Origin: Macrostomum lignano
Taxonomy: Eukaryota
Direction: 5' to 3'
Length of the DNA: 64,000 nt
Assembly: GCA_002269645.1 (NCBI GenBank)
Contig: NIVC01000543.1
Span: forward strand, 1 to 64,000
Below the pieces are notes generated by a model that was given only the letters and a program-made list of their open reading frames with translations, was not told the DNA's origin and made no database searches. The position numbers and the translations under genes are program-made. Below are positions 15,600 through 52,400 of the stretch, piece after piece. The first letter of the stretch is position 1. Each line of letters starts with the position of its first letter.

Positions 15600-17460
15600 T
15601 TCGACCATCATTACTAGAGAGAGGACGACTCGCGCCGCAAAACCCTTCTCTCCCTTCAAGTCACCGCGGGACCTGACAACATTTATCCTGCCTTCCTCCA
15701 TGAGGCAGTTAAAAATGACAGGTTTCTCGGTCTCCTTTGCAACCTATTCAAGGCCAGTATTACCCTCGGGTACGTGCCAAAAGCCTGGCAAGAGGCCAAT
15801 GGTGGTCTTCATACCCAAACCAGGGAAGGGAGACTATCACTCTGCCAAAGCTTACCGCCCTATCAGCTGACGTCTTTCTTCCTCAAACTGATGGAATGGC
15901 TGGTGCTCTGGCGCCTTCTCCTCGTTGAGCTGAGGAACTCCCCGCTCTCCCCTAATCAGCACGCCTTTCGTCCTGGACTCTCCATCGAAAGTGCGCTGCA
16001 TGCCATTGTCGATAAGCTGGAGCGCGCCGTGCTCGGCAGTGGATACGCGCTCTCGCTTTTCCTCGACATTGATGGTGCTTTCAATATTGTGCTCTTTGAA
16101 GCCTATAGGCGGGCCCTGGATTACCGGGGCACGCACGAGCACCTCACCCGCTGGATCATGTACATGGTCTCCCATCGGACTGCCATCTCGCACCTCCTGG
16201 GACACTCCCGCTCTGCTCTCCAGAAAGGTCGACCGCAAGATGGAGTTCTCAGCCCGATTCTATGGAACTTGATCGTCGATGAGTTTCTCTGCAGCCCACA
16301 TCCGGACCCGGTTCAAAGGTCGGCTATACGGATGATTTTACCCCCACTGTGGCTGGACCATCACCCGCGGTCCTCAGAGACCTCCTCCAAGTCAATTCAT
16401 CCACCGTGCCGAGCGCTGGGTCTCAGGTTCTCTGAGTCTAAAACCGTGGCTATCATGTTCGCCAGCCGCCGAAACTGGAGGATCAAACCGCTCTCCTTCT
16501 ATGGCAAACCGTTGCCATGGAGAAACAAACCAGATGTCTGGGCGTCACCCTCGACCACAGGTTGAGCTGGACTTCGCACGTCCAAACCAAAGCCCGCAAA
16601 GCTCTCGCGACTCTCGCGCAGATCCGCAGAGCTTTCGGCGCTACCTGGGGCCTCACCCCCGCCGCCTCTGGTGGATTTACACAGCCATCGTGAGACCGGC
16701 CATCTCCTTTGCCGGCTTCATTCGCCGGCCCTAGAGGTGAAATGGGTTCTCGATGCTTTCAACAGGGTGCAAGGCCGCGCTTGTCGAGCTATCATAAGCG
16801 CGGCTCCCTCTATACCCTTTGCTGGCATGAACTTCTTCCTTGACATTCCCCTCTTGACCTCTTTGTCAGAGGGGAGGCAATGAAGACCATCCACCGTCTG
16901 CTTGACGCAGATGTCCCCATCCAGAAGCAGTTCGCCTTCAAAAAGCGGAACGTTAGCCTGCGAGACCTGGAAGCAGCGGGAGGCCTGCTGACCCTCTCAT
17001 ACGGAATCCCGTCCACGCTCTGCCCTCCGCTCAAATTCAAAACCAGCATTCCACCACGTCATGAAGAACGGGACAACTGGAAATCCCGTGAAATCCACTG
17101 CTTCACTGACGGGTCCCAAATCAACTCCGCCTCTGGCTGCGGTTACTGCATCGTGTCTGGAAGGAGAATCGTGGCGACCTTCTCCCTGCACACCGGCACC
17201 TGCTCCATCGTTTTTCAGAACGAAGTTCTCGCCATCAGCTCCTGCGCCATTGAGCTGTATAATCAGTGCGTCTGGGGGAAGGAGATTATCCTCCACTCGG
17301 ACAGTCAAGCGGCGATCCACGCCTTTGAGCGCACTACCAACTGCTCGCGTACAGTCCTCGACTGCATCGGGCAGCTTAACCGCTTAGGCGCCTCTAACAA
17401 GGTGTCCCTAAGGTGGATCGCCGGGCACTCGGGCCAATTGGCTGTCCAAGGCTGGCTCGA
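15600..17460 (+). pseudogene. Reverse transcriptase plus RNase H remnant of the Loa/I-like LINE
   Basis: ORF fragments 15774-16565 (RT) and 16880-17836 (RNase H catalytic D/E/D) with frameshifts between them. Confidence 0.85.
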
Positions 17461-18452
17461 CCGGTTCCTTTACTGGTCCCCTGCCCGTGGCCCCCACCCC
17501 TACCGCCGTTGTCACCACTCGGATCAACCAGCGGGTGCTTCAAATCACAGGGAGAGGTGGGCTAACGCCCCCAACTGCCGTCAATCCCGCGCGGCTGTCC
17601 CCTATCCTTCCTCCGCGCTGCTTGGACTCAACCGCAGGGACATCAGGGCGATGACCATGGCCCTCTCGGGTCATGTCTGTTTTGCCAGGCATCGTTTGCT
17701 GGGCACTGGCTGGCAGCAACTATGCCTTGGCAGGAAGTTGCTGCAATGCTTGAATTCAATTATCGCTATAGAGGCATCCTGCGCCGCTAGGACTGGCCTG
17801 GAGATACGTGTAGGTGTGAAAATCAGACAGCCCTAGCTATAGCTCTGCAACTTGAGAGAAAATTAAGTTCAGGGGTTCAGAGGTAGAATGAATGCCTTAA
17901 GCAAGCTAGATAAAAATACTTTACTGTAAGTTCTTGCCTTTTCGAAGAAGCCAATTATAAACATGACGCATGAGCTTCAGTGAATCGAAGCACTACGTTA
18001 ACAAATGGGTGTAAAAGTTCTAGCAAGCCTACTACTTCGTATGTATCATGGATATAAATAGGTGGCCTGGACGGTTTCAAATTTATCCAAATATCAGTAA
18101 GCTACGAGGGTAGCTTGAACCTCAGAACGCAGAGGCAGAACGACCTATAGCTGAGCCTGTTCGATCAGGCTCTTTGCACCCGTATCTCTCACAGCACGCT
18201 GGGTGTTCGCACTGAAGCTTCGCTGGCCAAACAGGCGCAGCCGGACCAAACTGGACTGGTTTCTGAGCGTACATTCGAGGCTGTGACAAGCCAGTTTAAC
18301 ATAAATTAAGCCTGACCCTCTGACTGTATGCGATAAGAAGCCACCAGCTGAAAGTATTTGATAAATTCGAGCTGGGCACGAAGCGCTGAAGAAGTAGAAA
18401 TTAGCTGGTCTAGTTTTTCTTTCCAGCTATAGAGAAGCAATTCGCAATCAAG

Positions 18453-20772
18453 ATGCAGGTAAAAGTAAATTCTACAGGCATTATGCTGCTACTAATAATG
18501 CTTTTGTTCTGTACTGCAACTGCAAATGGAGCATTGAGAAAGGAAAGAGTGCATGTGATCTTCATGAACCACCTGGACGTCGGGTACAACGGCATTCCAG
18601 ACACCGGCTACATTAACAATGTTCTGAATAGATACTTCCATGTGCACTTTCCGCAGGCACTCAGTCTGGTAAAACAGATAAGAGAGGGAGGATTCAGAGA
18701 GAGATTCCGGTACACCACCCATCCGTGGCTCTTGGACATGTACCTGAACTGTCCTGACCTCATTCTTAACGGCATCCAGCTGCAGTGTCCAAACTCTACT
18801 GACCTGGAGGCGATGAAGGACGCGCTCACGCTCGGAGATATTGTGTGGCACGCTGGACCAATGAACATGCAGATTGAGAACATGAAAGGAGCCCTGCTAG
18901 AGGCTTCACTCAACATCAGCAGACGACTCGACGAGAAGTTCCAGCCAGAGAAGAAGATACGAGTTCTCAGTCAGCGCGATGTTCCAGGAATGACGAGTGC
19001 GGCGATTCCAGTGTTGAAGAAGAACAATATCGTGGCCGTGTCTGTTGGAGTCAACCCAGCCTCGTATCCTCCAGAAGTCACAAGGGAACCATTCGTGTGG
19101 TTGGACGAGTTGAGTCAAGAATCGATCGTCGGTATTTGGCACCCGGGAGGTTATCCCAACGAACCGGGAAACAGTCCAGCGAATCCGGGCGGCATCAGCG
19201 TCAAGGACTGCAGCATGGTGAGCGGAGTACCGGAGATTCTCTGCTTCTCGTTTAGAACTGACAACCAGGGACCTCCTCAGAGTGTTGCGGAAGTACTCAA
19301 TTCATACGAGATACTGAGAGATCAGTTCAATGGAGCAGAGGTGATTGCATCGACGCTGGAGGACTTCGTACAGGCCATTCTGCCCTACCAGAGTCTCATG
19401 CAGGTAGTGCGGACGGAAATCGGTGACACTTGGATCCAAGGAATCGCGTCGGATCCTCGCAAGATGGCAGAGTACCGAGCATTGAGTCGCGCATTCACGA
19501 GATGTCGCAGTGACGGAGCCTGTAGCGGGAACGACCCGCAGGTGAGTAAAGCTTTTGAAGTTCTATTTAAGATTAAAACTCCCTAGAGGAGCTACAAGTA
19601 AAATGAAATCGAGTTAACAACAACAAAAATCAATAACTCGGTGTCAAATTATCAAATCAAAGGTCCAGGACGCTGTTCGGTACATGATCAAGCCGCCTGA
19701 GCACACCTGGGGTTTGCCGTCACAGCCGGATCAGAACAACTACAGGAATGTGGACTTCAACAAGGCTAGGAGCGGATCGGCCTACGTGCAGAATGAGAAC
19801 GCGTGGCTCGAGCAGCGCATGTTTAACACTCTGGCAGTACAGGCAGCGAAGGGACACCCTCTCAGCAGCTACATGGCTCAGGAGATGAGTCAGCTCACTC
19901 CGACTCTGCCTGACATGACGGGATACGTGAAGCAGAGTCTTCAGCCCGACGCGATATTCGAGTATGGCTACTATCGATTCAGCTTCTTTTCCGATGGTTC
20001 GATTGACCACCTGCAAATCAATGGAGGCCAGAGCTTTGCGAATCAGCGAGACCGGCTTGCAAAGTTTGTATACCGCTCGTACGATGAGCTGGACGACAAC
20101 AAGCTGCTGCGGAGCTACGGAAACCCAGGCTACGGAAAGCCGAACATCACGGCCAACGCGAACCCGCTCAGTCTGGAGTGGCGTATGCTCGCCACCGATT
20201 TTTACCGCAAGCCGGATAACAGCAGCTTCGTGATCGTCGTTGTACCGGAGGACTCGCTCGCCGTCAGCGACTACGGCGCTCCGCAGAAGGTCTTCCTCAC
20301 CTACAACTTCTCCAGCGGCATCGACGTCGACGTGCTCGTGTGGAACAAGACGTCCACTCGGATCGAGGAGGGCCTGTTCGTCGAGTTCCGAGCTTCTGCT
20401 GACATGGCCGACGCTCCAAACGCGTCGTGTCGGTGGCTGCTGAACAAGGTAGACGGGTACGTCGACCCGATGCGAGTGACCTACGGCGGCTCCATCCTGC
20501 AGCACGCAATCAACGAGCACGCGGTTTTCTCCTGCGAGATGGGCGCCTCTAAGAAAGTGCTGGTTGTGCAGTCGAAGGACGTTCCTTTGGCTTGCCCGTT
20601 CAGCCGCTTCCAGGAGGCCAGCGTGTTCCCGTACCTCGACCGGCTGACTCGGGTCGACGGCGTCAGCTTCAACATCTACAACAACGTGTGGATCACGAAC
20701 TACATCTTCTGGTACCCGTACCACACTGGAGACCAGAACTTCAAGGCTAGGTTTAGTCTGCTCGGGATGTGA
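18453..20772 (+). CDS. Secreted GH38-like (alpha-mannosidase-fold, DUF5054-type) glycoside hydrolase; exons 18453 (or 18483)-19541 and 19663-20772 (about 722-732 aa)
   Basis: Signal peptide 'MLLLIMLLFCTATANG', 'HVIFMNHLDVGY' (GH38-like metal-binding HxD), 'QRDVPG', 'GDTWIQGIASDPRK', 'PPEHTWG', 'FNIYNNVWITNYIFWYP'. CAG|GTGAGT...AAG|GTC phase-0 intron. The DUF5054 label is from memory and not verified by search. Confidence 0.75.
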
Positions 20773-34287: not shown

Positions 34288-37200
34288 ATGCTATCAGTTC
34301 TGTTACTGTCTCTGGCCATTTTGGCCGGCCCAGCGGTTGGTCAGACCTTCGGCAACTTTACCTGGGTGTTTGAGAAACTCGACTACCACCCGACCACTGT
34401 GACTTTCGGCAACGTTCTTCGCTTCCGAGTTAACGGCACGATGGACGCCACGTCGAGCAGCGAGCTGCGCATCGAAATCTACACGGCTAGCGACAACACG
34501 TCCGCCCTTTTCTCTATCTGCTCCCCTACGATCATCAGCATCGGCTCCGGTCTGAGTGGCAGCATCAACGCCACCGTCCTGAACAGCCAGTGGATCATGG
34601 AGTCCAAGGGCAACGACTATCGCAGCGAGAGAGCCATTCTGAACGTTGTCAACATCACCAATACTGGGGCCTCCGGAGCTAACAGTAAGATTGTTTTTGA
34701 GTTCAGCGCAATTGTCCTGAATTCACCCCGCATGGCCCTAAACACGAGCTACTATGTGAGCTTTGGTGCTCGCTACGCCAATCAAACTAAGGTCTGGGTG
34801 GGACAGGCAGCTTACCCCTGGCAGAATGTGACCGCTAACACTAGCGCCACTGTCTCCAACCTGACCCTAACGGGACCATCAAGTCTCATGATTGGCGAGA
34901 CGGGAGTGTTTACCGCCAAATTTACTACGGGAGTCATGCTGAACCAGATCATCATGGATATCTTTGCCCCACTGAACACAACCGACATCATGTCCGTCTG
35001 CTTTGCAACTATCGGCGAGGACAGTGGTAGATCATTCAGCTGTGGTCCGACCAGCGGCAACCTGACCTTCCCGTCAAGGGTTCTATACGACGCTGCCTCA
35101 GGCGAGTACCGCAACGCCATCGCCACGTTTGACGCTGGAGAACTGATCAACGGAGCGATGAGAACCGGCTCAACAACCGATGCGGACAACACAGTTACGT
35201 TCAAGATCGCGGCTAAGATGCTAAACGGAAGCTCCGTCGGTACGCCCTACAAGTTCGGCATCGCTTTGCAGCATAACTATGCCCAGATTTGGACGGCCAG
35301 CGTTAATGTTTCTGCCGAAGCAGCCAACTGGACAACGCCATCCGCAAACCCCGTAATGCAGCTTACGCAGAACATGGACTACGTAATGATTGGGTCCACG
35401 GCAACTGTATTTTTGAACATGACGCTCCCACGGAACAGCACCACCAACTACAAGGTAGAAGTTGCCCTACCTTTTAACGACTCGCAGGCCCTCATGACGT
35501 TTCAACGCATTCGTATCCTCCATGTGGGTAGAAACATGCCTTGCTTCTACTACAACACCAACAACGTGACGCTAATTAGCTCGGCTAATGACACCAACAA
35601 AGACTACATAATTTTCGACTTGGGTCCAATCACTGACACCGGAATCCGCAGCGGCCTTTATGACGACGACATTGTAATCGAGATTTCTGGGCTTGTTCTG
35701 AACCACTCGCTCATCACTTCCGGTGGCAGCCTGAAAGTAGTTGCTGGAGTTCGCTATGGCAATGCCATCTGGGTTTCGTCTCAGAACTTCACTGTCGTCA
35801 CGACGCAACCGACTTACCCAATCAATAAGCAGCTGCAGATTACTCTTAAGAACGCCATGACAGTCAGTACCATCTATAATGGAACAACCCATGCTTTCTG
35901 GCTTGACATCTACCAGCCCATCGGTACCCACTATGGCCCCATGGACATCGAGCTTATTACTGTCATGGATAACAATCGCGCTGTTTTGTCCATTTGCGAT
36001 GTGCAGGTCCTGCTACTGGGAGATAATTTTATCAACATCAACACGAGCTCCTTGACGGTCACAAATGTTTCTACTGCTGATGATGGATTTGTTGATCGAG
36101 TGCTCATTCGATTCCCATCAAAATACGTTTCCAACGTGGGCATGCTCGACTTTCCATGGAGCCGAGAGAAGAATACTATTCGATTCCAAATTTTGACAAG
36201 CATAACGCCTCATTACATCACGAACACAAGCAATCTCTTCAACGACAGCCTGTACTGGATTGGCGCGAGTGTGAAGTACGAAGAAAACAAGCTATTTGTG
36301 TCCCGTGTTGGAGTCGACTATGATCCGACTACTACGTTCAACAACATCTCGAGCGTAAACGAATCCTCATTTAGCACAGTCCAGCAGACACCCAATACTA
36401 CCGTGTGGGTTGGAGGGACATACACAATGCAGTACAACATGACCAGCGTTATCCAAAGCTATGGTCGCTACGTCATTGATGTTGTGTCGCTGAATGAGAA
36501 CCTCCACATTTGCCGCGTGGGCCTGGCTAAAAGGGGTGTGAACGTACCTTGCCTTGGCCAAATGATTGAACCAAATGTGACCCTCGCTAATGGCAGCAGC
36601 ACTATCGTTAAGGAGTACCAGTTAGATCTTTTGAACTTTGCAAATGTGGGTCAACCATGCACCAAGTACAGCGGTAGCGACAACTCCGGTCTGTTCGATG
36701 TAGTTCTACAAGTTAAGTCGGGTACTACAGGATCGGTTGTGTCAGCTGGTGGGGTCATTTATATCGGCTCGAAAAAGCTCTGGGTGGATGGTGTGAATAT
36801 AACAATCAACAGCACTCTGCCCAGCATTCAGTTCACGCCTCAATTTAGCCTTGGACTTAGAAATGGATCGCAGAATTTAGTCCGAAATGGTACCCATACT
36901 GTCGTACTGGAAGGATACCTGCCCGTGGATACCCTGGGCGAATACTCGGTCGACTTCCTCGTTCCATTTAACACAAGCGATCGAGGCAAGCTTCATATTT
37001 GTTCTACCAGGGTCGTTCGTGTTGGCTGGAACTTGCCCTGTGTGAATGACACCCAGCTGACTAGGGTTTTCAACGACACTTACGATTCTGGGGCTACTGA
37101 CAGAAGTCAAATTAACCTGGGCTTCATCCAAAACATTGCCACTTCTGGTGCGGTGGTTCAGGAAGATAACAAAATAATTATTGAGGCCGACATTTACGTG

Positions 37201-39390
37201 AACGGAACAATGACAAGCGTAGGAGAAACGCTTTGGGTTGGAGCCTCGGTGAACATCAGCAACAGTCTTGTTTGGGTCGGCAGCAAGTCGCTAACCGTAA
37301 CGGACACTCTGCCCACTATAACTGGACTGAATCCCTACATCACCCCGGCCGTGACAGATACGGTGCAAATGAATATTTTCGAAGAGAGAACTTTACATTT
37401 AATGTCACAATCGCCGAGTCGCTGACCAACTTCACGCTCACTATTTATTCCAACGCAACTCCTGCTAGTTCGGAGGCAAAGTTCACCTTCCGTGAACTAA
37501 ATGTTACCTACAAGGGTACCAACATTTGCTGCCAGGACAAACTTAATTTTGTATATTCCAACGTTTCGACTTTGGGCAATACCCAGGTAGACGTGATCAT
37601 GGCAAACGCTTATGTTGGTAACACTGGAGTCTTCAGACGTCACCAGTGGAGCAAGTATCATAAGGATTCTGACGTGCTGCAGTTCAAAGTAAAGGCTCGC
37701 CTAATGGATCACGAGGACAACATCGCCAATAGTGTCCAGTACATCTACTGTAACTTGACTTTCAGTGGAGAGACGGTCTCTACGAACGCTCCTGTGATGG
37801 TGAATATTACGGCCACGGATAAGCCAAGCTTACAGATCTTCCAGACGGAGGTACAGAACCTGTCGGTTTATAGTAAGATACCGGGCGCGGACGTACAGCT
37901 GGCTATTCGTCTCAACCACACGGAGACGTCACGCGGAAATGCTTACGGTGTCAACCTTTTCTGGTACATACCCTACGTCATTGGATACTCGGCTTTTGTG
38001 AGCTCCGTCCCATTCACTGTCACCGTCCAGAACAACACAAACGCTAGCGAGGGAATTCTAATCACTTTCCCTCGCATCACGTACACCGATGATCTGTACA
38101 TCGTGATCAATGCTACAGTCGATCCTCTGGGCGCCTTGAAGTACGGAAGCGGCATCACCTTCATTACGCTACTTGCCGATGCTTTTACACGCACCGAAAC
38201 AAGCCAGGTTCCGTCGTTACTACAACCGCCGTAAATGCTTACTCGCCAACCTTCCGCGCTGGACTGAATGTCTTCGTACCCGACTGCGCAAACCCATTGG
38301 GAATGGAGTCGGGTGCTATAGCAGACTGTCAGATCACCTCCAGCGGCTATCTGGGCACGGACAGCCCACTCCACAGCCGCTACAACTCCACCGCTGCTTG
38401 GACTACGCTTCACCGCGGGCCACCATTCTACGGCAACGAGTTCCTGGAGATCAACTTAGGAAATCGAACCCGAGTCAGCGCGGTCAGGCTTCAGTCGCAT
38501 AAGGATGATACCAACAACAAGGTGGATACCTTCTGGTTTCAATACAGCGAGGAGGGTCTTCTATGGTTTGATGTCAACAGCAACAACACCAACACCAAGG
38601 AGGTAAGTTGCGCAATATTTTTAACTATATTAGAAGCTGTGCAGACAGCCATTGTTGCCAGAAAACAGCGCATCAATACAAGCTGCTTTCAAATTTCGAT
38701 AACTTTCAGGTTTACACGGCTACTTACTCTGGCGGCTCAGCTTACGTGAAGCTAAACAAGGCCATTGTAGGTCGGTACATCAGGATACTGCCTTTGACTG
38801 GCTCGCCAAAGACCTACAGCCGCTCGCTGCGCGTGGAATTTTATGGTTGTCAGCAGACAACCGACGTGACACCTGCTGAAGCATGCTACGAAGTGACGAC
38901 CAAGGCCACTGGCTTCAGCCACAGTCGCAGCTACGTCATCAGTCCCAAAGAGGGCGCCATTTACGCTTGCATGCTCTATAGGCCCGGGGGTCGGGCCCAC
39001 TGCTCTCGCTCTGTGGACTTTGGCGCCAGCTGGGAAGCATTGGACAGCGTGATCAGCCAGATTGGCTTCGTCCTGCCGACCGACTCGAGCATCTACGGCA
39101 CCGCCTACGATGAACGGAGCCGCATGAAGTCCATTGACGGCGGTTGGAGCTGGTTCGCCATCTCGGAGGAGGACTACACGACCAACCTGGCTCTGGGCCG
39201 CCGCGCCATTGAGATTCCGTGGCAGGACTTCGGCACCAACAACGCCACTCTGCTGTGCCCCACATATGGCATGAAGTACAATGACACCTTCACCGTTAGC
39301 GTCGACGTCACGGGCCTCCACATCAGCAAGGACGGCCAGAACAAGACCTGGACGCTGATCGCCGGCTGGGCCGATGCCAACTGGCTCTGA
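34288..39390 (+). CDS. Large secreted, sequon-rich protein (about 1,660 aa): tandem ~160-aa beta-rich repeats, an F5/8 type C (discoidin) domain and Asp-box (BNR) motifs; two -1 frameshifts (about 37385 and 38185); intron 38603-38709
   Basis: Signal peptide 'MLSVLLLSLAILAGPAVG'. Repeated 'G..Y....(I/V)W' and 'S(I/V)C......G.N.PC' motifs. F5/8C 'CANPLGMESGAIADCQITSS..AW..EFLEINLG..GRYIRILP..SLRVEFYGC'. Asp boxes 'SVDFGASW' and 'SIDGGWSW'. GAG|GTAAGT..CAG|GTT intron is in frame. Confidence 0.8.
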
Positions 39391-42096
39391 GAGAGTCGGC
39401 CAGGATAAACCGGAGCACATAAAGTGGAGAACCAACTTTGCCTGAGGAACTGAAAAGCATCGACTCCAGAACAGAGAATATTTAGGCTCTCGAGTTCATT
39501 TTTTCACGGCTTTATCTAACAGTTTAAATTTTTTTCAAATCAAAAAACTCATAAAGGAAAATTATGTACCTTTAATTTTTTCTTATAAAAAGTAGTCACT
39601 TTTTTATACAGTAGTATTTTTCTGAGCTAGCAGTAATTTCATACCAGATAGCTGGACTGGTGACTCAAGGCTGCCTGATGCTTTTGGAAGAAATTTGGCA
39701 TCGATCAAATGAGAACCGACACTTTTTATTTAAGCGTTACAGAATCAATGAATAATCTCGCGCGAAACCAACTGGATATGAAGGAATGAAATCGGGAATT
39801 AGGAAGAGTTGCCTTGGCTGTCCGTCCAACTTTGGTTACTTTCGCTAGTACAAGCGCTGCCCTCTTGTTAACCACTTTGCATACAAAAAACAAAGCAACT
39901 GTTTAATTTTGCCTCTTCAAAAATGCCTGTCATTTTTCTGTCAGTTCACAAATTATCAACTGTTTTTGTTCCGCGAAAATCGATTCGTGTCAAAACTAAG
40001 TAACAAAATTCTACTCTTTCAAAAAAGCAAATACAGAATATACTGTCAACAGCATCCTCTCCGCAATTCTGCTTGCGCAGTGGCCAGGTTCTCCTTTATT
40101 AACAGCAGAGTGACGCCAGAAGCCTCAAGAAGAGAAGAGAGGCTCAAGAAGAGGTGGCACTAAGAAGGCAAAGCGACTTTTTGTCTTTGAAAGACAGAAC
40201 AGCTGCAGACATGCGGAGCTGCAGTGAGGGAACAATCGAAGAAGACGAAGGGGAGGAGAGGGGCGACAGGCCTCGCTAGCAGAGTTCCCGTCCCAGCAGT
40301 CCCCCGACAAAGCATGAAAAATTCATGGCGACACCCCCGCCCTCCTCCGCCAGCCGCCAGATCGATGCGGCACTGCTGCTGCAATAAACCAGTTGGCTGC
40401 TGGCATCGGAGAGAGAAGGCTTCTGTACCCCCCCCCCCCTGTTTGCAATTTGCCCCAGCTTCTAGTTACCAGGCGGGCAAACAGCAGCAGCCCCAGCTCA
40501 GGTGAGTTGGCATCAGGTGAGATGAAGGGACAGAGGCAGGCAGGCGGCTCATGCGAGACGATGGGGGCGGCGCTTCGCTGCGCGAGCATGCAGGGGTGGA
40601 AAATGAATGCGGGCGGCCAGTGGCGGCGGCCGATAGTTGATTTCTGCTGCATGGATGCGCAGAAGATGGGGGGAGTTGCCACCGCGCTTCGGCTGATGGG
40701 AGCGGTTGCCATGACAAATAGTTGGGGCTCATGTGACTGCCGGCTTATCCCAACCCGCAGCAGCTCCATCCCTCCGTCCTGGCTTCCCACTGCCTTGCGC
40801 CAATGCAGAATGCAAGAAATCGCCTCTATGAGTGGAGTAGCAGCGGGAATTTTTTGTGTGAGTCTGTTCTCTCAGTGCGGAGAAGCTGCTTGCTAGCCTC
40901 AGACATGGAAAGAGCTCATTAGATGCGACTTCGAATGGAGCTCACTAAAAACTGGAAGCTCACTTGTGTATTTTATATACGGACTTTTCTCGATGATAAA
41001 CCAAAGCCCGAAAAGCAAAATGCAGAATGGCAAATCTTAGCGAAATCTGTCTTAGTGATTTTGTTCAAAGTTAAAACAGATGAACTCGCGGGAGCCCTGC
41101 AACCTCGGAAAAGACCTGCCCAGAAGTTGAGCAATTGTCGCGTTTGAGTTGGAACAGCTCAGCGCTGCTCAAAGTGAAGGCTTATCTAATGTACCACGCC
41201 AGAAAAGAGAATATTTTTTAGCCTGTGTTAGGCCTTTGTTACTATCAGTAGTACTACTAACAATATTTGTTTTTTTGAGGCGGACTGCCTGACGGCAGAA
41301 GGTTAAATATATAAAGTAACTCAAAACAAAGGGCAAAGAGCACTTAACATGTATCCAGACTTCATCAAGGATTTCTAGAAGTACTCGTAGCGGTGTTATC
41401 GAGAATATTACACTCGCGATTACTGGGATTAGCGGGCCCTGTCATAAGGCCTGACTTGGTCTCGAACTCGCAACTGCAGTTGTTGCACGAGGAAGCGTCT
41501 CATTTATTCTGTGTAAGGATAAATAAATGAGTTCTGACGCTTCCCAATAATCTTCTGATTAATTGAATGTAGGCAAAAAATTCTCGGCAACGGAAGATTT
41601 TTTATTAGTATGAACGGTTTTCATAAACTATTCTTTTTAAACCTTCTTTATTCCAATTACGCTCGTATTTCATCAAAGTCACATGCAGTTGACAGCGCTC
41701 GTACAGTTAGGCACTTCATGGCAACAGCTCAGCAGGGAAAGATTGTATAATTTACGCTACTGTACTCTACATCTACATGTATGCACTACAGAAAATTGAT
41801 TTTGTAATAAAAAGCAATAATTAGTACTGTACCTTCTAAATATACTAAATCTCTAAGGTTTGTATGCTTGTCCATATACTAATATTGTATGTAACTATAA
41901 GTATAACTTTATAACTATATTGAATTCGCTTTTCATGCCTTTACATCTGAAAAACCTTCAGGAAGTCTTTGAGAATCCACACAACATCACCGTCTGGCCA
42001 AGCCATGATCTCAATGGGAGCAGTAACGAGCTACCTTGAAAGCCTGACAAATCTTGCAGGTTAAATGTTCAATTTGAAATACGAAGCAAAGGTGCA

Positions 42097-43332
42097 TCAG
42101 CCAGTGGCAAGTGTAAATCCTTCGCTGTAAATAAGGTGGTCAAAGTCCTTATGAATCCACAATATATCGCAGTCCTCCCACAGTTCTGCATTTTTGACAT
42201 CCAGCGCTGACAGGCCCGGAGTCCGCCAAGCGGAGTAGTTTCTGCTGGCGAAGAAGTCCACTATCGTTGCGCTGTCAGTTCCGACCATGTGCTGCCTCAG
42301 AAACTCCATCTGCACAAAAACCACTCTGAACTGGCTGAACAGACAGCCCGACGTCCTCAGGAAGTCCGCCTCTCCGCCCTCGATGTCCAGCTTGATGACG
42401 ACGTTCCTCGTGCCGATGAGGCCGCACAGCCGCTCGCTCCTTACCGGCATCACGGGGATCGAGTCGACCACGGCTCTGCCGAACTTGGTCGCTCCGCCGA
42501 CGTTGCAGTCGTCAGGGAAGTTGAGGAAGCTCAGCTGGTCTCCGGATCCGATGAAGTTCCACACGAGCGCCGCATCGAGCGCCGCCGCGTTGAGGCTCAG
42601 CCGCAGCCGGAGCAGGTTGCGGATGTTCGCGTCCAGCGACACGACGGGCAGCCCGAGTCTCGCGGCCAGCAAGCTGTAGACACCGATGTTGCAACCCGCG
42701 TCGAGGAAGGTCGCGTTCGGCACCTTCAGAGCCAGTCTCATGGTTGTATGGACCAGCTCACGCTCCCATTCGTGACTGGTCTTGATGACCTCAGAAATGC
42801 TGTCTCTCTCAGAGTAGACAAACATCTTCACCTTGGTGTTATTCATGTCCAGCAGATCGGCGGTCGAGCTGTCGGACCGCACAACCTCGAGGATTCTGTC
42901 ATCGAACGGGTTCTGCAGCCGGCACATGGGGAACCCGCCCGCCGCTTTCTCGTACGCCTTGGCGCCGCTGCACAGGACGTGGCGGAGCGCCGGCTGCTGG
43001 AAGTCCACATTGCGCAGCTCATTGTAGATTTTGCAGTTTGTTTTTATTGTTGCCGGTGCTCTTGTTTGCAACTCTGTTTGCAGCGGTCGCGTAGCAACAG
43101 TCTTCGCGATCGCTGTTTCGTTTTTCCTACTCGAAATCTGTCTTCCACTTTCCTTTGGAGTTTCTACGATTTGGATTGGATTTGGTACATGGGCATCGGA
43201 AATGAAATGCTTTTTCGAAGACCGCGGTTTGATATGGTCGCGCCATCGTACCCTGGAGTACAAAATGTACGCCATGAAGAGGGCCGTGGCGCACAAGGCG
43301 AGCAGCATAATATTTTGCTTTGGCCGAGCCAT
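42097..43332 (-). CDS. FkbM-family (Methyltransf_21) SAM-dependent methyltransferase, paralog 1, N-terminal signal anchor, intronless (411 aa from the first ATG)
   Basis: 'FLDAGCNIGVYSL' (motif I), 'IKLDIEGGE', hydrophobic 'IMLLALCATALFMAYILY' after a short basic N-terminus, followed by a Ser/Thr/Pro-rich stem. Confidence 0.88.
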   Translation of the reverse strand: MARPKQNIMLLALCATALFMAYILYSRVRWRDHIKPRSSKKHFISDAHVPNPIQIVETPKESGRQISSRKNETAIAKTVATRPLQTELQTRAPATIKTNCKIYNELRNVDFQQPALRHVLCSGAKAYEKAAGGFPMCRLQNPFDDRILEVVRSDSSTADLLDMNNTKVKMFVYSERDSISEVIKTSHEWERELVHTTMRLALKVPNATFLDAGCNIGVYSLLAARLGLPVVSLDANIRNLLRLRLSLNAAALDAALVWNFIGSGDQLSFLNFPDDCNVGGATKFGRAVVDSIPVMPVRSERLCGLIGTRNVVIKLDIEGGEADFLRTSGCLFSQFRVVFVQMEFLRQHMVGTDSATIVDFFASRNYSAWRTPGLSALDVKNAELWEDCDILWIHKDFDHLIYSEGFTLATG

Positions 43333-44670
43333 CAGTGGGAAGTGAACTTCAGTTGTCCCAAATCCTGCAGTCACTTTGAACTCTGGCCACAACACGACTG
43401 GCTTCGTGAGCTTCAGACAAAAGCATTTCAGTGCGATGCATTTTTATTATTCCAACTCTGCTCACTCGCCAGCCAGGACTGTTGCTCTGATTCAAGCTCA
43501 TCGAACCCTATTGGCTGCTAATCGAAAAAAGATTCGGTTAGAAGGCTGCATACGTGTCTCAAGGAGAGCTTACGAAAAACCTTTTACTAATACTTTTACT
43601 AATAGGAATTTCTCTTGCTCCTGAGTCCGGCGCTAAGTCATAAATGATATTAGCGAGCTGCGCATGCAGCATTGGAAAACGGCAGAGTCGTGCCAATCAA
43701 CGCATTTTCCTAAGCTCATTGCATGCCGCGCAGTGCCCCAGAGTCTCCAGGGGTACACTGTAGAAAGGTTCAGAGTCAGAAGAGAAGCATACGGCAAAGC
43801 ATTAGTGAAGCATGTGGTGCCATGGCAGCTGGTTACGCGCAATTGTGTTTAATCGTTGCAGCAGTCCGTACTGAGACGGTGCAAGCCAAACGGCAGTGAC
43901 TGCAGCATATTTGAGCGGGAGGGTTGAGCGTTTCATTCCACACAAGACCAGCTACCACTGCGAGATCGCCTCGTATTACTGCCGTATTGAGAATTGTGTC
44001 GAAGTGAGAAATAAAAGGCAAATTGGGTACGCAGAGATTCACGACTTGTTACACCGTCTCGAGCCTCGTGCATTTATTTACATTGCAACTCACAAACTGA
44101 GAGATATTTTGCCGCGCCAAAACATAAACTCATTCAAGTGCAATAAGCTACAAGCTCGCGGCGGGCAGGCCCTCACGCTATGAGTACAGTACTTGTACAT
44201 TAAACTTATAGAGTCAGTCAATAAAAACGCATAAGACCGTTAGCTAATCAAGAGTGACGCAACCCAGTGGAGCCACAGTATTGTCAATCGTTCCTCTGCC
44301 CCCTCCGAATTGAATTGGGAGGAGATGGGGAAAGCTAAGGCAGGAAAAATTCCTATTAAATGACTTCAGCAAAAGTGGGCTGAAGCCGGAATTATGAAGT
44401 TCCGGGAATAGAATGCTCAAACGCCGCCAGTAGTACCAGAAATGATTTTCTATTTTGACGCAAAGTCTTGATGTCCAATCTAAAACTCTTTGGTCATAAA
44501 GTCAGCAATTTCTGTACGCAAGCACCTAAACCAATACTACAATGTGTTGTACCAGCTGCAAAGCTTTACCTGACTTTAATCGATTTGGAATGCCAGAATG
44601 GCAAGATAAAGAGCAGAGGCGCAGCCATTAAACTCCGCGTCAAGTCAGCCAAGTCTGACTGACATCCGGC

Positions 44671-45777
44671 ATGGCTCTCTCAAGGCAGAAAATTCTGGCT
44701 CTCCTACTTACTGCCTGCTGCGTCGCCTTCTGGGCGCTATTGGAAGAGAGGCAGCCAGCAAAAATGACTCAGAAGAGCTCGAAATTCAACAGCATCAGCT
44801 GCAGGTTGGACTCTACGCTTTGCGACGCTCTGGTGGAGATCAGCAGCGGAGCAGCTCAGCATGTAAGGTGCCACAGCCACCTGGAGCTGCGCGAATTTGA
44901 CTTTCGTCACCCTAAGTTCAGGAGCATCCTCTGCAAAGATGAAAAAGCATTTGTGAGAGCTGGAGGGAGCTACCCGCTGTGTCGGCTGCAACACCCGTTC
45001 AATATTCAGTTGCTGGACGTTGTCAGGAGAGGAAGTCTGGTCGCGAAACTCCTTGATATGAGGAATGAGTTTATCCAAATGTTTGTGTATCCTGAGAACG
45101 ACGCAATTTCTATGCAGATCATGACAAGCAAGAATTGGGAGCCAGAAATTGTGCATACAACCATGAGACTCGCTCTGAAGGTGCCGAACGCGACCTTCCT
45201 CGACGCGGGTTGCAACATCGGTGTCTACAGCCTGCTGGCCGCGAGACTCGGGCTGCCCGTCGTGTCGCTGGACGCGAACATCCGCAACCTGCTCCGGCTG
45301 CGGCTGAGCCTCAACGCGGCGGCGCTCGATGCGGCGCTCGTGTGGAACTTCATCGGATCCGGAGACCAGCTGAGCTTCCTCAACTTCCCTGACGACTGCA
45401 ACGTCGGCGGAGCGACCAAGTTCGGCAGAGCCGTGATCGACTCGATCCCCGTGATGCCGGTAAGGAGCGAGCGGCTGTGCGGCCTCATCGGCACGAGGAA
45501 CGTCGTCATCAAGCTGGACATCGAGGGCGGAGAGGCGGACTTCCTGAGGACGTCGGGCTGTCTGTTCAGCCAGTTCAGAGTGGCTGCAGTTCAAATAGAG
45601 ATCTTGGAAAGGCACATGCCTGCGGATGACAGGGCTTTTGTAACAGATTTTTTTATCAGTCGCAAATACAGCGCATGGAGAGCGCAGACCCTGGAGCGGC
45701 TGAACTTGTCGGCTGCTAAAAGTTGGGAGGATGGCGATATAATTTGGCTGCACAAGGACTTTAAGCACCTACTTTGA
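44671..45777 (+). CDS. FkbM-family methyltransferase, paralog 2, signal anchor, intronless (368 aa)
   Basis: 'MALSRQKILALLLTACCVAFWALL'; same motif I and IKLDIEG motif; distinct C-terminus. Confidence 0.88.
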   Translation: MALSRQKILALLLTACCVAFWALLEERQPAKMTQKSSKFNSISCRLDSTLCDALVEISSGAAQHVRCHSHLELREFDFRHPKFRSILCKDEKAFVRAGGSYPLCRLQHPFNIQLLDVVRRGSLVAKLLDMRNEFIQMFVYPENDAISMQIMTSKNWEPEIVHTTMRLALKVPNATFLDAGCNIGVYSLLAARLGLPVVSLDANIRNLLRLRLSLNAAALDAALVWNFIGSGDQLSFLNFPDDCNVGGATKFGRAVIDSIPVMPVRSERLCGLIGTRNVVIKLDIEGGEADFLRTSGCLFSQFRVAAVQIEILERHMPADDRAFVTDFFISRKYSAWRAQTLERLNLSAAKSWEDGDIIWLHKDFKHLL

Positions 45778-46682
45778 AACTGTTAAGAAGATTGAATTTA
45801 CATGTATAAACACTTGCCAGGCAAATAAATCAAATGGGGTGTACGAGCGTATGCTGGCTAGAAAGCACTACAGTTTTGTTCGATTTCTGGGTCTCTCTGG
45901 TAACTTTAGTTCCATGATAAAGTTACTTAACTGGTGAAATCACCTCGGAATAAAAAAATATATGCAGTAGGTCTTCATAGGCTTTTCGAAAGTCTTGGAG
46001 AGTCTCAAAATGTGAGAAAATGTCAAATCTTGGCAAAAACTGTAAATTCGTTATCCTAACTGATGCATTTCAAACCGCAATCGAGTCCCCATTACGATTT
46101 TCATAACTATTGATACTAGCGAGACAGACGTGTCGCGTCCTCTTAATACTAACGGTTCTTGTTCCCTAATCTGCTGCCAGTCCACCCTACTATAGTGACT
46201 CTGCATCCGCAAGACTTACTGGACTCTAGCCCCGTGCCCTGTGCCAGCAAATGGTCTGAGTGAGTGCTGCACTCGAATACACCACAGAAATTCTGTTAAA
46301 CACGCGTAGAAGCAAGTGAAATCGCAATAAAATAAAATTAAGCACGTCTCCAGCAATCGTGCATTTTTGGCAATGGATATCATTTCGAATAGACCGTTTG
46401 CGGCAGTTCTGACGCTTCACTGTAGAAAAGGAAAATCGATTTGCCTCTGTAGAGGGCTGAGGCAGCGCTGTCTTAGTTTCTATTGCTTCGCTGTCCGCAT
46501 AGGTTGTACTCCACTACTTTTTTCAACAGCTGCCAGCCAAGCAGTTGCAGTTGGAGGCAACGGGGACGTGGATCTGGGAGTCACTGTAATAAAGCCAAGG
46601 CAGCCAGCTCTCAGCAACTGATCTCAGACTTGAGAAATTCATAAACCAGCGGGTACAGCGCCCAGGGCAAGTTGGAAGGACC

Positions 46683-47741
46683 ATGCTGACCCTCAGGTAC
46701 CTGAGGGTGCTGTTACTACTAGCCTGCAGCACCGCCTATCTCTGCGTCAGACTGTACAACTCTGTCTCGAACAGCGCACGCGTAGAAATGCGACCGAAAA
46801 ATTGCGTCGCCTACTCAGAACTGAAGAACATGAGCTTTCTGGACCCGAAACTGCGACATCGCCTATGCGTCAATGCCGAGGCCTACAAACAAACTTCGGC
46901 TGTTTTCCCGCTGTGCAAACTACCCACCCCGTTCGTGCCGCAGATTATGCAGATTATCCGCAAGGGCAGCGTGCCAGCTCGAATCCGCGATTTCAACGAA
47001 AATCTGCTGGAAATGTTCGTCTACCCTGGGAAAGACATGATTTCTGAGGCCATCAAGACCAGTCACGAATGGGAGCGTGAGCTGGTCCATACAACCATGA
47101 GACTGGCTCTGAAGGTGCCGAACGCGACCTTCCTCGACGCGGGTTGCAACATCGGTGTCTACAGCCTGCTGGCCGCGAGACTCGGGCTGCCCGTCGTGTC
47201 GCTGGACGCGAACATCCGCAACCTGCTCCGGCTGCGGCTGAGCCTCAACGCGGCGGCGCTCGATGCGGCGCTCGTGTGGAACTTCATCGGATCCGGAGAC
47301 CAGCTGAGCTTCCTCAACTTCCCTGACGACTGCAACGTCGGCGGAGCGACCAAGTTCGGCAGAGCCGTGGTCGACTCGATCCCCGTGATGCCGGTAAGGA
47401 GCGAGCGGCTGTGCGGCCTCATCGGCACGAGGAACGTCGTCATCAAGCTGGACATCGAGGGCGGAGAGGCGGACTTCCTGAGGACGTCGGGCTGTCTGTT
47501 CAGCCAGTTCAGAGTGGTTTTTGTGCAGATGGAGTTTCTGAGGCAGCACATGGTCGGAACTGACAGCGCAACGATAGTGGACTTCTTCGCCAGCAGAAAC
47601 TACTCCGCTTGGCGGACTCCGGGCCTGTCAGCGCTGGATGTCAAAAATGCAGAACTGTGGGAGGACTGCGATATATTGTGGATTCATAAGGACTTTGACC
47701 ACCTTATTTACAGCGAAGGATTTACACTTGCCACTGGCTGA
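46683..47741 (+). CDS. FkbM-family methyltransferase, paralog 3, signal anchor, intronless (352 aa)
   Basis: 'MLTLRYLRVLLLLACSTAYLCVRL'; core and C-terminus identical in protein to paralog 1. Confidence 0.88.
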   Translation: MLTLRYLRVLLLLACSTAYLCVRLYNSVSNSARVEMRPKNCVAYSELKNMSFLDPKLRHRLCVNAEAYKQTSAVFPLCKLPTPFVPQIMQIIRKGSVPARIRDFNENLLEMFVYPGKDMISEAIKTSHEWERELVHTTMRLALKVPNATFLDAGCNIGVYSLLAARLGLPVVSLDANIRNLLRLRLSLNAAALDAALVWNFIGSGDQLSFLNFPDDCNVGGATKFGRAVVDSIPVMPVRSERLCGLIGTRNVVIKLDIEGGEADFLRTSGCLFSQFRVVFVQMEFLRQHMVGTDSATIVDFFASRNYSAWRTPGLSALDVKNAELWEDCDILWIHKDFDHLIYSEGFTLATG

Positions 47742-48262
47742 TGCACCTTTGCTTCGTATTTCAAATTGAACATTTAACCTGCAAGATTTGTCAGGCTTTC
47801 AAGGTAGCTCGTTACTGCTCCCATTGAGATCAATCTGAGGAGATCAATAAATGGCAGCAGGAATACATAAAAACGAACATGATAAACTAGACCCCTTAAA
47901 ATCCATGCTAAGTATGACATTCAAGATCACACCGCCAATAAAGAGACGCCACCTAACGATTCAATGACCACTTAGAAGCTGGACGAGACACAATTTCTTA
48001 CATTTTGAGATTGAACTTGCATCTCAAAGCTTTGACTCATTGCTAGTATTAATTACATATCAATTGCTCATCCTGGATGTAACTCGCCCGCTCTGCCTCT
48101 GTATTGGCACATTTTTCCTGCAATTTCCGGATTCCGTCTGCCCTGCCCGCCCTACGTACCAAGCGAGCGACGCCGCCTTGAGCCGGAAATGTTTTTATTG
48201 ATTTTTTCTCCCTAATTACTACGAGTGTCTACAATCATAAACGGCGTTGCCCTCTTTGGTAA

Positions 48263-48783
48263 CCCTCTGGTAAATAAACCAGATAACACCACAAGATAAC
48301 TTTCGCTCAAACAAGATAACATGCCCCATTCCGGTTATGCAAAATGTTATCTTGTATGAATCCTGTTTGCGTGACGAAATCTTACGTTTCCTTGTTTCAA
48401 ACAAGATTCAAATAGGATTCATTGACCAGGTAACAGTCGGGTAATTCATGCGAATCCTGCAGGGAAACATCGTGTTATCCTGTTTGTTATCCTGTCTGGC
48501 AAACAAGATTCGCTGACCAGATAACAGTCAAACAAGAAAACAAAAAAATTATCTGGTGGCGAATCTTGTCAAGTAATCTGATTTCTAAGCAAGATTCGGG
48601 ACATGTTATCTGGTGAAATTCAGATAACTCACCAGATAACAGTCAAACCAGATAACACTAAAATTACCTGGTGACGAATCTGGTGGTTTCACCAGTTTCG
48701 CACCTCAAAAAAGGAAATCGGTAGTGAATCTGACAAGATTCGCAAGTTATCTTGTGGTGTTATCTGGTTTATTTACCAGAGGG
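48263..48783. mobile_element. 521-bp MITE with 40-bp TIRs (CCCTCTGGTAAATAAACCAGATAAC...), candidate 2-bp AA TSD; CACTA/EnSpm-like
   Basis: 48263-48302 is the reverse complement of 48744-48783. Many internal CAGATAAC/GTTATC subterminal repeats occur in both orientations. The superfamily call is inference. Confidence 0.8.
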
Positions 48784-49482: not shown

Positions 49483-52400
49483 TCACAGCTTCAGGTTGCG
49501 CAGGTCGCAGGCTGCCTCGAACATTGTGGCCATGCTCCAGGCCTGGGCCTGGCAGCTGTGCGGGCAGGGCTGCAGTTCATTGGGGGGGGTTGGAGTTGGT
49601 CATTGCACGAGATCGCCTACTAACAAGTAGTTAATAAAGCATCTTGAAGCGAATATCTTATAGCGAGTGCAAAAAGGTCAAGACCAGCTTGGACGGTGAA
49701 CTATGAAGCAATGACAAACATTCGTAGGAGGGTTGTGAAAACCTTGGGCGACATCGTTGAGGCAATTCTACAGACTCACACACGCGCGTATACGGGGTGT
49801 ACAGCAGCCCTGACTTTCTACACTGCCTGTGCCTCATCGGGTGTGAATCGCATGACGGCCGATCTCCCAGCCGACTTTTGTGCACAAGCTTCAAGTAAAT
49901 GTGGCTGCGCACAAAATAGAACCAACCCTGCCCCCTTGCACCTGCTCTGCCCCCTTGCACCTGCTCTGCCCCTTACACATGCTCTGCCCCCTTGCACCTG
50001 CTCTGCCCCCTTACACATGCTCTGCCCCCTTGCACCTGCTCTGCCCCCTTGCACCTGCTCTGCCCCCTTACACATGCTCTGCCCCCTTGCACCTGCTCTG
50101 CCCCCTTGCACCTTCTCTGCCCCCTTGCACCTGCTCTGCCCCCTTGCACCTGCTCTGCCCCTTACACATGCTCTGCCCCTTGCACATGCTCTGCCCCTTA
50201 CACATGCTCTGCCCCTTACACATGCTCTGCCCCCTTGCACATGCTCTGCCCCTTGCACATGCTCTGCCCCCTTGCACCTGCTCTGCCCCCTTGCACCTGC
50301 TCTGCCCCTTACACATGCTCTGCCCCTTACACATGCTCTGCCCCCTTGCACCTGCTCTGCCCCCTTGCACCTGCTCTGCCCCTTGCACATGCTCTGCCCC
50401 TTACACATGCTCTGCCCCCTTGCACCTGCTCTGCCCCCTTGCACCTGCTCTGCCCCTTGCACATGCTCTGCCCCTTACATATGCTCTGCCCCCTTGCACC
50501 TGCTCTGCCCCTTACACATGCTCTGCCCCCTTGCACCTGCTCTGCCCCCTTGCACCTGCTCTGCCCCTTGCACATGCTCTGCCCCTTACACATGCTCTGC
50601 CCCCTTGCACCTGCTCTGCCCCCTTGCACATGCTCTGCCCCCTTGCACCTGCTCTGCCCCCTTGCACATGCTCTGCCCCCTTGCACCTGCTCTGCCCCTT
50701 GCACATGCTCTGCCCCTTACACATGCTCTGCCCCTTGCACATGCTCTGCCCCTTACACATGCTCTGCCCCCTTGCACCTGCTCTGCCCCCTTGCACATGC
50801 TCTGCCCCCTTGCACCTGCTCTGCCCCCTTGCACCGGCTCTGCCCCCTTACACATGCTCTGCCCCTTACACCTGCTCTGCCCCCTTGCACCTGCTCTGCC
50901 CCCTTGCACCTGCTCTGCCCCCTTACACATGCTCTGCCCCTTGCACATGCTCTGCCCCTTACACATGCTCTGCCCCCTTGCACCTGCTCTGCCCCCTTGC
51001 ACATGCTCTGCCCCTTGCACCTGCTCTGCCCCCTTGCACATGCTCTGCCCCCTTGCACCTGCTCTGCCCCTTACACATGCTCTGCCCCTTACACATGCTC
51101 TGCCCCTTACACATGCTCTGCCCCCTTACACATGCTCTGCCCCCTTGCACATGCTCTGCCCCTTACACATGCTCTGCCCCTTACACATGCTCTGCCCCTT
51201 ACACATGCTCTGCCCCCTTACACATGCTCTGCCCCCTTACACATGCTCTGCCCCCTTGCACATGCTCTTCCCCTTACACATGCTCTGCCCCTTGCACATG
51301 CTCTGCCCCTTACACATGCTCTGCCCCTTACACATGCTCTGCCCCCTTACACATGCTCTGCCTCTTACACATGCTCTGCCCTCTGCATTCTTTACTTGCT
51401 ACTCTCCAGTGGGCGGTTTTTCATACTGTTGTAGCCGCAGCAATACTTCTGAGCAGTGATTAGAGGGAAGCTACAACTAATCAATATGAGCAGAAACAGC
51501 TGCTGAAGCCTCACCTCTCCATCCCGGTTGGTGAGCTCGGGCAGGCTGTGCCAGTCGGAGGCCTCCATGGCGGCCTGGCAGCGGGCCAGCACGGCCTGGA
51601 CGTGACCGACCTGGTCGGAAGGCGGTTCCGAGAAAGCGAGCCGGGCGCGCAGGTAATAGCCCACCGGCCACAGCCACTCGGGCCCATTGTGATAGGAGAA
51701 GCCGCCGGCCACGCTGAAGTCGCCGGAGTCGTCAGAGTTGTCGTAGCGGCCGCGGTAGGCCGGGTCGGCGGGGTCGAGCGTCCGCATGCCGAGCGGGCCA
51801 AGCAGCCGGCGCTCCGTCAGCTCCAGGGCGGCGCGGGCGCGCTCGGCGCTGAACAAGAACGGTGCCGTCACCATGGCAACTAGAAAGTTTGGCCGCAACT
51901 GCCGGCCTTCGGGGTCGTCGGCGGGATCCACGTCCGGCAGCCAGCGGTCGCGGTAGTGGCCGGACTCGAGCAGCCAGAAGCGCGGCTCGAACTGCTTGGC
52001 GAGGTCGGCGGCCCAGTCGGCCCAGGAGACGAGCCGGCCGCCGTGCTTGACGCCCTCGTACGGGTAGGCGGACCTGCGCAGGAGCGACAGGCAGAGCGGC
52101 ACTCAGATTTTTTATTTATTTTTTTTAGAGGCAGGGGGGGTTGTGTGCACCCTGGCGCACTTTAAGCGACATTGGCACACAACCGGCGAGAGGCATTACT
52201 GCCCATTCCACCGACTCCCCTGAGCAGGCATACAAGCGCGCGGATACGTACGCAGGCACACACTCACACAGGAGTGTACAGCGGCCCTAACTTTATATTA
52301 TCGTTAGGCATGTACACTTCACTGCGCCTTGGGGGGTTGGCTCTCAAGGCCGTTAATTGCATGAGCAGAGCCAAGCCGAGATTCCAATTCAGCCCCAAAT

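Follow-up and report, generated by a model that had tools for sequence, protein, structure and literature searches.

The window considered here comprises the first 64 kb of contig NIVC01000543.1 in the Macrostomum lignano assembly GCA_002269645.1, so that window and record coordinates coincide, and it carries a trio of genes for FkbM-like methyltransferases, designated P1, P2 and P3. Judging from the sequence, these genes are very probably old duplicates that have been recently and non-reciprocally homogenised by interlocus gene conversion, in two nested tracts. The assembly version is Mlig_3_7, from the inbred DV1 line; the further family members found on GCA_002269645.1 and the discoidin gene neighbouring the trio likewise bear the name Macrostomum lignano. 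For Mlig_3_7, PacBio continuous long reads (CLR) were assembled by Canu 1.4, and Pilon polishing then drew on Illumina reads mapped by Bowtie2 and RNA-seq reads mapped by STAR (PMC5730564).

Three paralogous genes and their shared tracts

P1 occupies 42097-43332 on the minus strand and encodes 411 amino acids (aa) when counted from the first ATG at 43332; its open reading frame (ORF) as listed runs over 42097-43395 (minus strand), with the frame remaining open upstream to 43404. In the record it is annotated as a 5′-partial coding sequence (CDS) of 435 aa, and the called gene (42097-43404, minus strand) was found by exact look-up to be identical to protein P0001 on NIVC01000543.1. P2 (44671-45777, plus strand; 368 aa), which has N- and C-terminal parts of its own, lies head-to-head with P1 and shares 71% amino acid identity with it, while P3 (46683-47741, plus strand; 352 aa) follows P2 in tandem and has the opposite orientation to P1. 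P2 was delimited as an ORF, and P1 and P3 by their ORFs together with a match to the Pfam family PF05050. A search of the window by tblastn returned no fourth copy. The description of the trio as intronless paralogs, put forward in an earlier sequence-only reading of this DNA, was borne out, as no ORF is interrupted and all three align over their whole length with the single-exon relative P0002. Only P1 is a called gene in the public record, exact look-ups for P2 and P3 having found none; both may have been removed from the gene calls by multi-mapping reads in the identical core or by repeat filtering at annotation.

The divergent P1 and P2 are separated by a spacer of 1.3 kb (43333-44670), which showed no similarity to the region upstream of P3. 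In fact, blastn comparison of the gene flanks matched only the coding tracts, and the small ORFs of the spacer gave no Pfam match. Long antisense ORFs, of up to 410 aa, lie over all three genes (42289-43521, plus strand; 44737-45768, minus strand; 46920-47549, minus strand), and such frames are expected as by-products of a high GC content at third codon positions (GC3) in the sense frame rather than as genes.

Direct sequence comparison delimited an inverted tract shared by P1 (42006-42798, minus strand) and P3 (47040-47832, plus strand). It is 793 nt long and ungapped, with two mismatches (at 42788 and 42672; 99.7% identity), its arms are 4241 nt apart, and it spans the end of the stem, the core, the C-terminal part and then 91 nt 3′ of the stop codons, in agreement with the 793-bp identity, C-terminus and 3′ flank included, that had been noticed earlier. 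The repeat finder reported an arm of 825 nt, in which the innermost 32 nt, about 75% identical, lie beyond this tract. Nested within it is a core of 430 nt that is common to all three genes and encodes HTTMRL...QFRV, with copies at 42321-42750 in P1 (minus strand; aa 195-337), 45154-45583 in P2 (plus strand; aa 162-304) and 47088-47517 in P3 (plus strand; aa 136-278). The mismatches per 430 nt number one between P1 and P3, two between P2 and P3 and three between P1 and P2, the last pair forming inverted repeats of 99.3% identity with a 2403-nt spacer. P2 does share this core alone and has its own C-terminus, as had been claimed, and alignment of the three copies recovered the proposed layout, namely N1-core-C1 on the minus strand followed by N2-core-C2 and N3-core-C1 on the plus strand, along with its sharp boundaries.

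Outside the tracts, the flanks are overall 50-62% identical, and the 40-nt stretches that border the P2 core match P3 at 60% and 52.5% identity. At its outer end (42006/47832), the P1/P3 tract also stops abruptly, in non-coding sequence past which no homology could be detected. None of 10,000 shuffles of alignment columns reached the longest perfect runs (539, 203 and 264 nt), the largest shuffled run being 102 nt, and third codon positions taken alone likewise gave 0/10,000; a chance origin of the identical runs is excluded. At the outer edge of the P3 arm, the 9-nt sequence GAGATCAAT occurs twice, 14 nt apart (47826-47834 and 47840-47848), just before AATAAA, and P1 carries GAGATCA once.

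Age of the duplication and selective constraint

Synonymous (dS) and nonsynonymous (dN) divergence were estimated by the Nei-Gojobori method on a codon alignment. In the core, dS was 0.009-0.018 and dN 0-0.003, against a dS of 1.6-2.1 and a dN of 0.48-0.67 in the alignable upstream stem and of 2.6 and 0.45, respectively, in the C-terminal part of P2 compared with P1/P3. For the flanks together, dS was 1.6-2.6 (saturated) and dN 0.40-0.67, with an omega of about 0.2-0.3. Since the synonymous sites of the flanks are saturated, the duplication is old, and their omega, together with the intact frames, indicates purifying selection on all three copies. On the other hand, the core and the 3′ half of P1 and P3 have been made identical recently. 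Selection at the protein level cannot explain this identity, because it extends to synonymous sites and to 91 nt of 3′ flank.

Probable gene conversion and its alternatives

The marks of gene conversion were found together at this locus: a near-identical tract bounded by diverged homologous sequence, homogenised synonymous and non-coding sites, and an excess run of identity. Under this reading, the three genes, which duplicated long ago and diverged over their full length, would later have received sequence from one another by non-reciprocal homologous repair, on two or more occasions that differed in their end points. A tract of 793 nt or more would have been transferred between the inverted P1 and P3, and another of about 430 nt, confined to the core, would link P2 with P1/P3. 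The core, as the best conserved part of the family, would have retained the best nucleotide homology, so that strand invasion and heteroduplex formation could succeed there, and the diverged flanks would have halted heteroduplex extension, which would account both for the limitation of conversion to the core and for the sharp edges. The 40%-identical paralog P0002 still keeps 75-82% nucleotide identity in parts of the core. On this account, sharp edges would need no ‘modules’. The direction and number of the conversion events, like this ‘homology trap’ account of the edges, are what we infer, the residual differences (0.25-0.7%) giving no order of events. Recent gene conversion of the core, one of the two possibilities raised by the sequence-only reading, is well supported by the contrast in dS (0.009-0.018 versus 1.6-2.6), the sharp edges and the non-coding 3′ extension.

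Some points weigh against gene conversion or limit what can be claimed for it. The evidence comes from one assembly of one inbred line. The outer end of the P1/P3 tract, without homology beyond, may reflect end joining or template switching instead of textbook conversion. Additionally, P2 and P3 are absent from the annotation, so that their expression is a prediction. The GC3 of the core (0.88, compared with 0.54-0.69 in the flanks) was considered as a signature of GC-biased conversion and rejected as non-diagnostic, since the conserved genes of the M. lignano genome have a GC3 of 0.78-0.84 and the core equivalent of the single-copy P0002 one of 0.84; the difference is more likely due to relaxation in the flanks than to enrichment in the core.

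The outer end also speaks for a non-homologous or template-switching partial duplication, in which the P1/P3 event would have started in coding homology and ended by joining in the 3′ flank. Canonical conversion needs homology on both sides, unlike such a duplication, and the end at 42006/47832 is abrupt, non-coding and without homology beyond; the doubled GAGATCAAT at the P3 edge may be a junction microhomology left by the transfer event, or it may be due to chance. However, with a flank dS above 1.6, an old homologous 3′ flank would be unalignable and an end lying inside homology would look alike, and the P2 core tract is bordered by coding homology at both ends, as in ordinary conversion, which leaves this explanation decidedly unlikely. 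It is very unlikely that the identity is an artefact of assembly or polishing, with Canu correction, or Pilon working on multi-mapping Illumina and RNA-seq reads, having homogenised cores that are in truth diverged. These programs can erase the last differences between near-identical copies, and the true core divergence may somewhat exceed 0.2-0.7%, but polishing cannot lift an identity of about 55-60% to 99.5% over 430-793 nt with base-sharp edges and an intact frame. Moreover, three copy-specific core differences survive polishing, and the cluster measures only 5.8 kb, so that long reads would be anchored in its unique flanks. A history without any transfer, in which extreme purifying selection that includes synonymous sites (through an overlapping RNA element or an antisense product) has held the core, is barely conceivable. 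It is true that the core is the best-conserved part of the family and that long antisense ORFs overlap it, but such ORFs are expected in high-GC3 sequence, synonymous divergence drops more than 100-fold within a few bases, and the core equivalent of P0002 is only 75-82% identical in its best stretches. The P1/P3 identity, for its part, extends over the 91 nt of 3′ flank as well as a C-terminal part in which P2 is 58% identical.

The other possibility raised earlier was a shufflon-like device, or recurrent recombination, in which crossing-over between inverted cores would swap the N- and C-terminal parts and generate a repertoire of up to 3x2 chimeric enzymes. The locus does contain long, near-perfect inverted repeats (793 nt at 99.7% with the 4241-nt spacer, and 430 nt at 99.3% with the 2403-nt spacer), and the cores share a reading frame. 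A simulated P1xP2 inversion gave the intact chimeric ORFs N1-core-C2 (401 aa) and N2-core-C1 (378 aa), and a simulated unequal P2xP3 exchange gave a 1934-bp deletion that left N2-core-C1; N3-core-C2 needed two steps in the simulated exchanges. However, simulated inversion over the longest repeat, P1xP3, left all three proteins unchanged. When 20 ORFs from the cluster and its neighbourhood in the 64-kb window were scanned against Pfam, no recombinase, integrase or transposase domain was detected, the domains found being only those of a long interspersed nuclear element (LINE) reverse transcriptase, RNase H, ion channels and DUF5054. A repeat search of the cluster found no short inverted recombination sites, its sole inverted repeats being the 430-793-nt coding tracts, and there is no common expression site among these three complete genes, each of which is equipped with a separate ATG, anchor, stem and stop codon. 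Of the four features by which a shufflon is defined, three were thus not found; the fourth is the coexistence of orientations, and the one inbred-line assembly showed no alternative arrangement, nor could it have done so. Reciprocal exchange alone would, in addition, not make the cores identical, and conversion would still be required. With no recombinase, no short sites and a silent P1xP3 inversion, the idea of a shufflon-like inversion found no support, and it is exceedingly unlikely as the origin of the tracts. That reciprocal recombination occurs between the inverted cores with appreciable frequency, in germline or somatic cells, giving inverted alleles and N1-core-C2/N2-core-C1 chimeras with the core as a cassette that re-pairs acceptor-recognition parts, is very improbable. 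Repeats of this kind could plausibly, in mechanistic terms, undergo sporadic non-allelic homologous recombination, and an inversion that arose by this route would amount to ordinary structural polymorphism; a selected or programmed role of inversion is unlikely.

The notion of ‘interchangeable modules’ is also made doubtful by the predicted structure. In the AlphaFold2 model of P3, obtained from a 20-sequence alignment (predicted local distance difference test, pLDDT, 89.6; predicted template modelling score, pTM, 0.84), the upstream edge of the core falls in helix 132-143, which precedes strand 148-153, the first of the nucleotide-binding fold, and the downstream edge falls at the start of strand 277-285, with later strands at 307-312, 316-318 and 329-335. 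The C-terminal part of class I methyltransferases supplies the final strands of their central sheet. The high pTM, together with edges that lie in a helix and at the start of a strand, therefore suggests that the tract edges cut one compact fold and do not follow domain borders, which likewise argues against the shufflon reading. Chimeras would probably still fold, the paralogs being homologous throughout, and would not be domain swaps.

Predicted fold, topology and function

The match to PF05050 (Methyltransf_21) is marginal for the trio (22-25 bits): P1 scored 24.7 and P3 24.1 bits, and P2, with 22.1 bits, lies just under the cut-off of 22.7. The relatives P0002 and P0005-P0020 have precomputed PF05050 matches. 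In the 20-sequence alignment, motif I of the P3 core (D152, G154, N156 and G158) is conserved in at least 90% of sequences, and K255, D257, E259, G260 and E262 (K-x-D-x-E-G-x-E), also in the core, are invariant; motif I (D-x-G-x-N-x-G) is the putative S-adenosylmethionine (SAM)-binding motif. A sequence search against solved structures gave marginal matches only (E 0.18 or weaker), so that a structure-based search was needed. In the latter, the top PDB matches of the P3 model in Foldseek were all SAM-dependent methyltransferases, with E-values down to 1.7e-6 and target TM-scores of about 0.5, which points to a predicted class I (Rossmann-like) SAM-dependent methyltransferase fold.

Each of the three proteins starts with a short basic N-terminus followed by a hydrophobic segment of about 19 residues and a stem with conserved cysteines, and N-x-S/T sequons are present. 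The hydrophobic anchor comprises aa 8-26 in P1 (43255-43311, minus strand; Kyte-Doolittle mean 2.12 over 19 aa), aa 8-26 in P2 (44692-44748, plus strand) and aa 4-22 in P3 (46692-46748, plus strand), and residues 2-31 of P3 form a single helix in the AlphaFold2 model. This layout resembles that of type II Golgi/endoplasmic reticulum (ER) enzymes, and a lumenal location in the secretory pathway is predicted. The cysteine-containing stem, of about 100 aa, is common to uncharacterised flatworm proteins, and the named molluscan and nemertean relatives align over the methyltransferase part only. Because the relatives occur in lophotrochozoans and the topology resembles that of Golgi enzymes, glycan O-methylation may be guessed as the reaction. 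Literature searches returned nothing specific on animal FkbM glycan methyltransferases.

Other members of the family

A library-wide profile search returned 69 representatives at E <= 1e-30. The named relatives came from M. lignano itself, several molluscs and one nemertean, and uncharacterised flatworm proteins were also found. The other family loci of M. lignano (L002/L003 and L004) hold one copy each, with no similar clusters or tracts. The single-exon P0002 is present on two contigs, at L002 (NIVC01000049.1) and L003 (NIVC01003749.1), with no nucleotide difference in the CDS and with flanks that are 94-99.6% identical; this pair is an example of the duplicated blocks of a neopolyploid assembly. 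For the trio, no second copy was found as an allele, as a homeolog, in another assembly or as a transcript, and protein look-ups placed P1 on one contig only. The neighbouring discoidin gene, BOX15_Mlig025174g4, was likewise found on NIVC01000543.1 only.

The top representative match, at 648 bits, was P0022 (504 aa). It was considered as a possible chimera and rejected, since it resembles P0002 and is unrelated to the trio. Within it a stretch of about 150 residues, comprising part of the stem and the beginning of the methyltransferase domain, is duplicated; either a genuine partial tandem duplication or an error of assembly or annotation in that other record would account for this.

Surroundings of the trio

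The surroundings of the trio are ordinary animal DNA, and the neighbours in the window include a two-pore potassium channel and a ligand-gated ion channel. Pfam scans identified a LINE-type reverse transcriptase ORF at 12049-13929 (minus strand), an RNase H-like ORF at 16880-17836 (plus strand) and a DUF5054 domain that extends over two consecutive ORFs (18453-19586 and 19684-20772, plus strand), the split suggesting an intron or a frameshift. An ORF of 1045 aa (34288-37425, plus strand), which adjoins the discoidin-domain gene and the methyltransferase trio, has an N-terminal signal peptide and 42 N-x-S/T sequons; it gave no Pfam or PDB sequence match, BLAST found no internal repeat in it, and its product looks like a heavily glycosylated secreted or surface protein. 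The same ORF was considered as a recombinase or transposable-element gene and rejected, on account of its signal peptide, its 42 sequons and the lack of a known domain. The discoidin (F5/8 type C) gene lies at 38303-39390 (plus strand) and has one 107-nt intron (38603-38709), its spliced product of 326 aa matching BOX15_Mlig025174g4 at 100%.

Just downstream of P3, a pair of 43-nt inverted repeats, 98% complementary (48263-48305 and 48741-48783), encloses two 57-nt direct repeats (at 48513 and 48628) rich in CCAGATAAC, and the element at 48263-48783 looks like a small non-autonomous transposon. A gene for glycogen-debranching enzyme is called from 49483 (minus strand). Inside its span lies a tandem array of about 78 copies of the 19-nt unit CTGCCCCCTTGCACATGCT (49928-51381; 92% matches), which produces long spurious ORFs in several frames.

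Significance and comparison with known systems

The locus adds an instance of a known process, from an uncharacterised gene family, and no programmed DNA-shuffling device is shown. Its practical consequences are modest, and the knowledge of how gene conversion works is unchanged. For the annotation of M. lignano and for expression analysis, short reads are not assignable within the identical tracts of 430-793 nt, and family trees built from whole genes will mislead. The trio are reasonable candidates for the enzymes of invertebrate glycan methylation, because the glycan methyltransferases of invertebrates were still unidentified as of 2023 (PMC7614267). Additionally, the natural mosaic, with a common core and a differing stem and C-terminus, is a ready-made specificity-swap experiment, and the locus offers a clean case in which conversion and non-allelic homologous recombination could be measured in a flatworm whose genome has recently duplicated.

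With the FkbM family (PF05050) the trio shares the Pfam match, both motifs and the predicted Rossmann-like fold, but it differs in its marginal Pfam scores, its N-terminal membrane anchor and its cysteine stem of about 100 aa. The R64 shufflon has the Rci recombinase, sites of about 19 bp and a single constant N-terminal expression site. As in that system, the inverted repeats of the trio lie inside coding sequence and inversion could in principle swap C-terminal segments; however, the trio is eukaryotic, its repeats measure hundreds of bases, its genes are complete, and the scanned ORFs contain no recombinase. A second point of comparison is provided by the human F8 intron-22 and FLNA/EMD inversions, which arise at inverted low-copy repeats of about 10 kb or more. 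There too, an inverted pair of at least 99% identity, above the minimal processing segment, flanks a short unique segment, but the repeats of the trio measure 0.4-0.8 kb, no inverted allele is on record for it, and inversion over the longest pair would be silent at the protein level.

The closest likeness is to gene conversion between linked paralogs. Cases of conversion include the inverted hsp70 pair of Drosophila, human gamma-globin, RHD/RHCE and CYP21. In Caenorhabditis, neighbouring paralogs are known to convert one another whether they lie in direct or in inverted orientation, over tracts that measure from 12 to about 3000 bp and can take in non-coding DNA, and the C. elegans cases comprise the inverted hsp16 modules, an inverted hsp70 pair, the tandem col-12/col-13 and fog-2/ftr-1 (PMC3966223). 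Literature searches returned nothing specific on gene conversion in M. lignano, and FkbM-like genes and a macrostomid flatworm are, as far as the searches show, new to this process. Compared with the known cases, the trio has three copies with one nested tract and is known from one genome. In common with the Caenorhabditis type, it has linked paralogs in direct and inverted orientation, a near-identical mosaic set in old divergence, a tract length within the documented range, homogenised synonymous sites and tracts that can take in non-coding flank.

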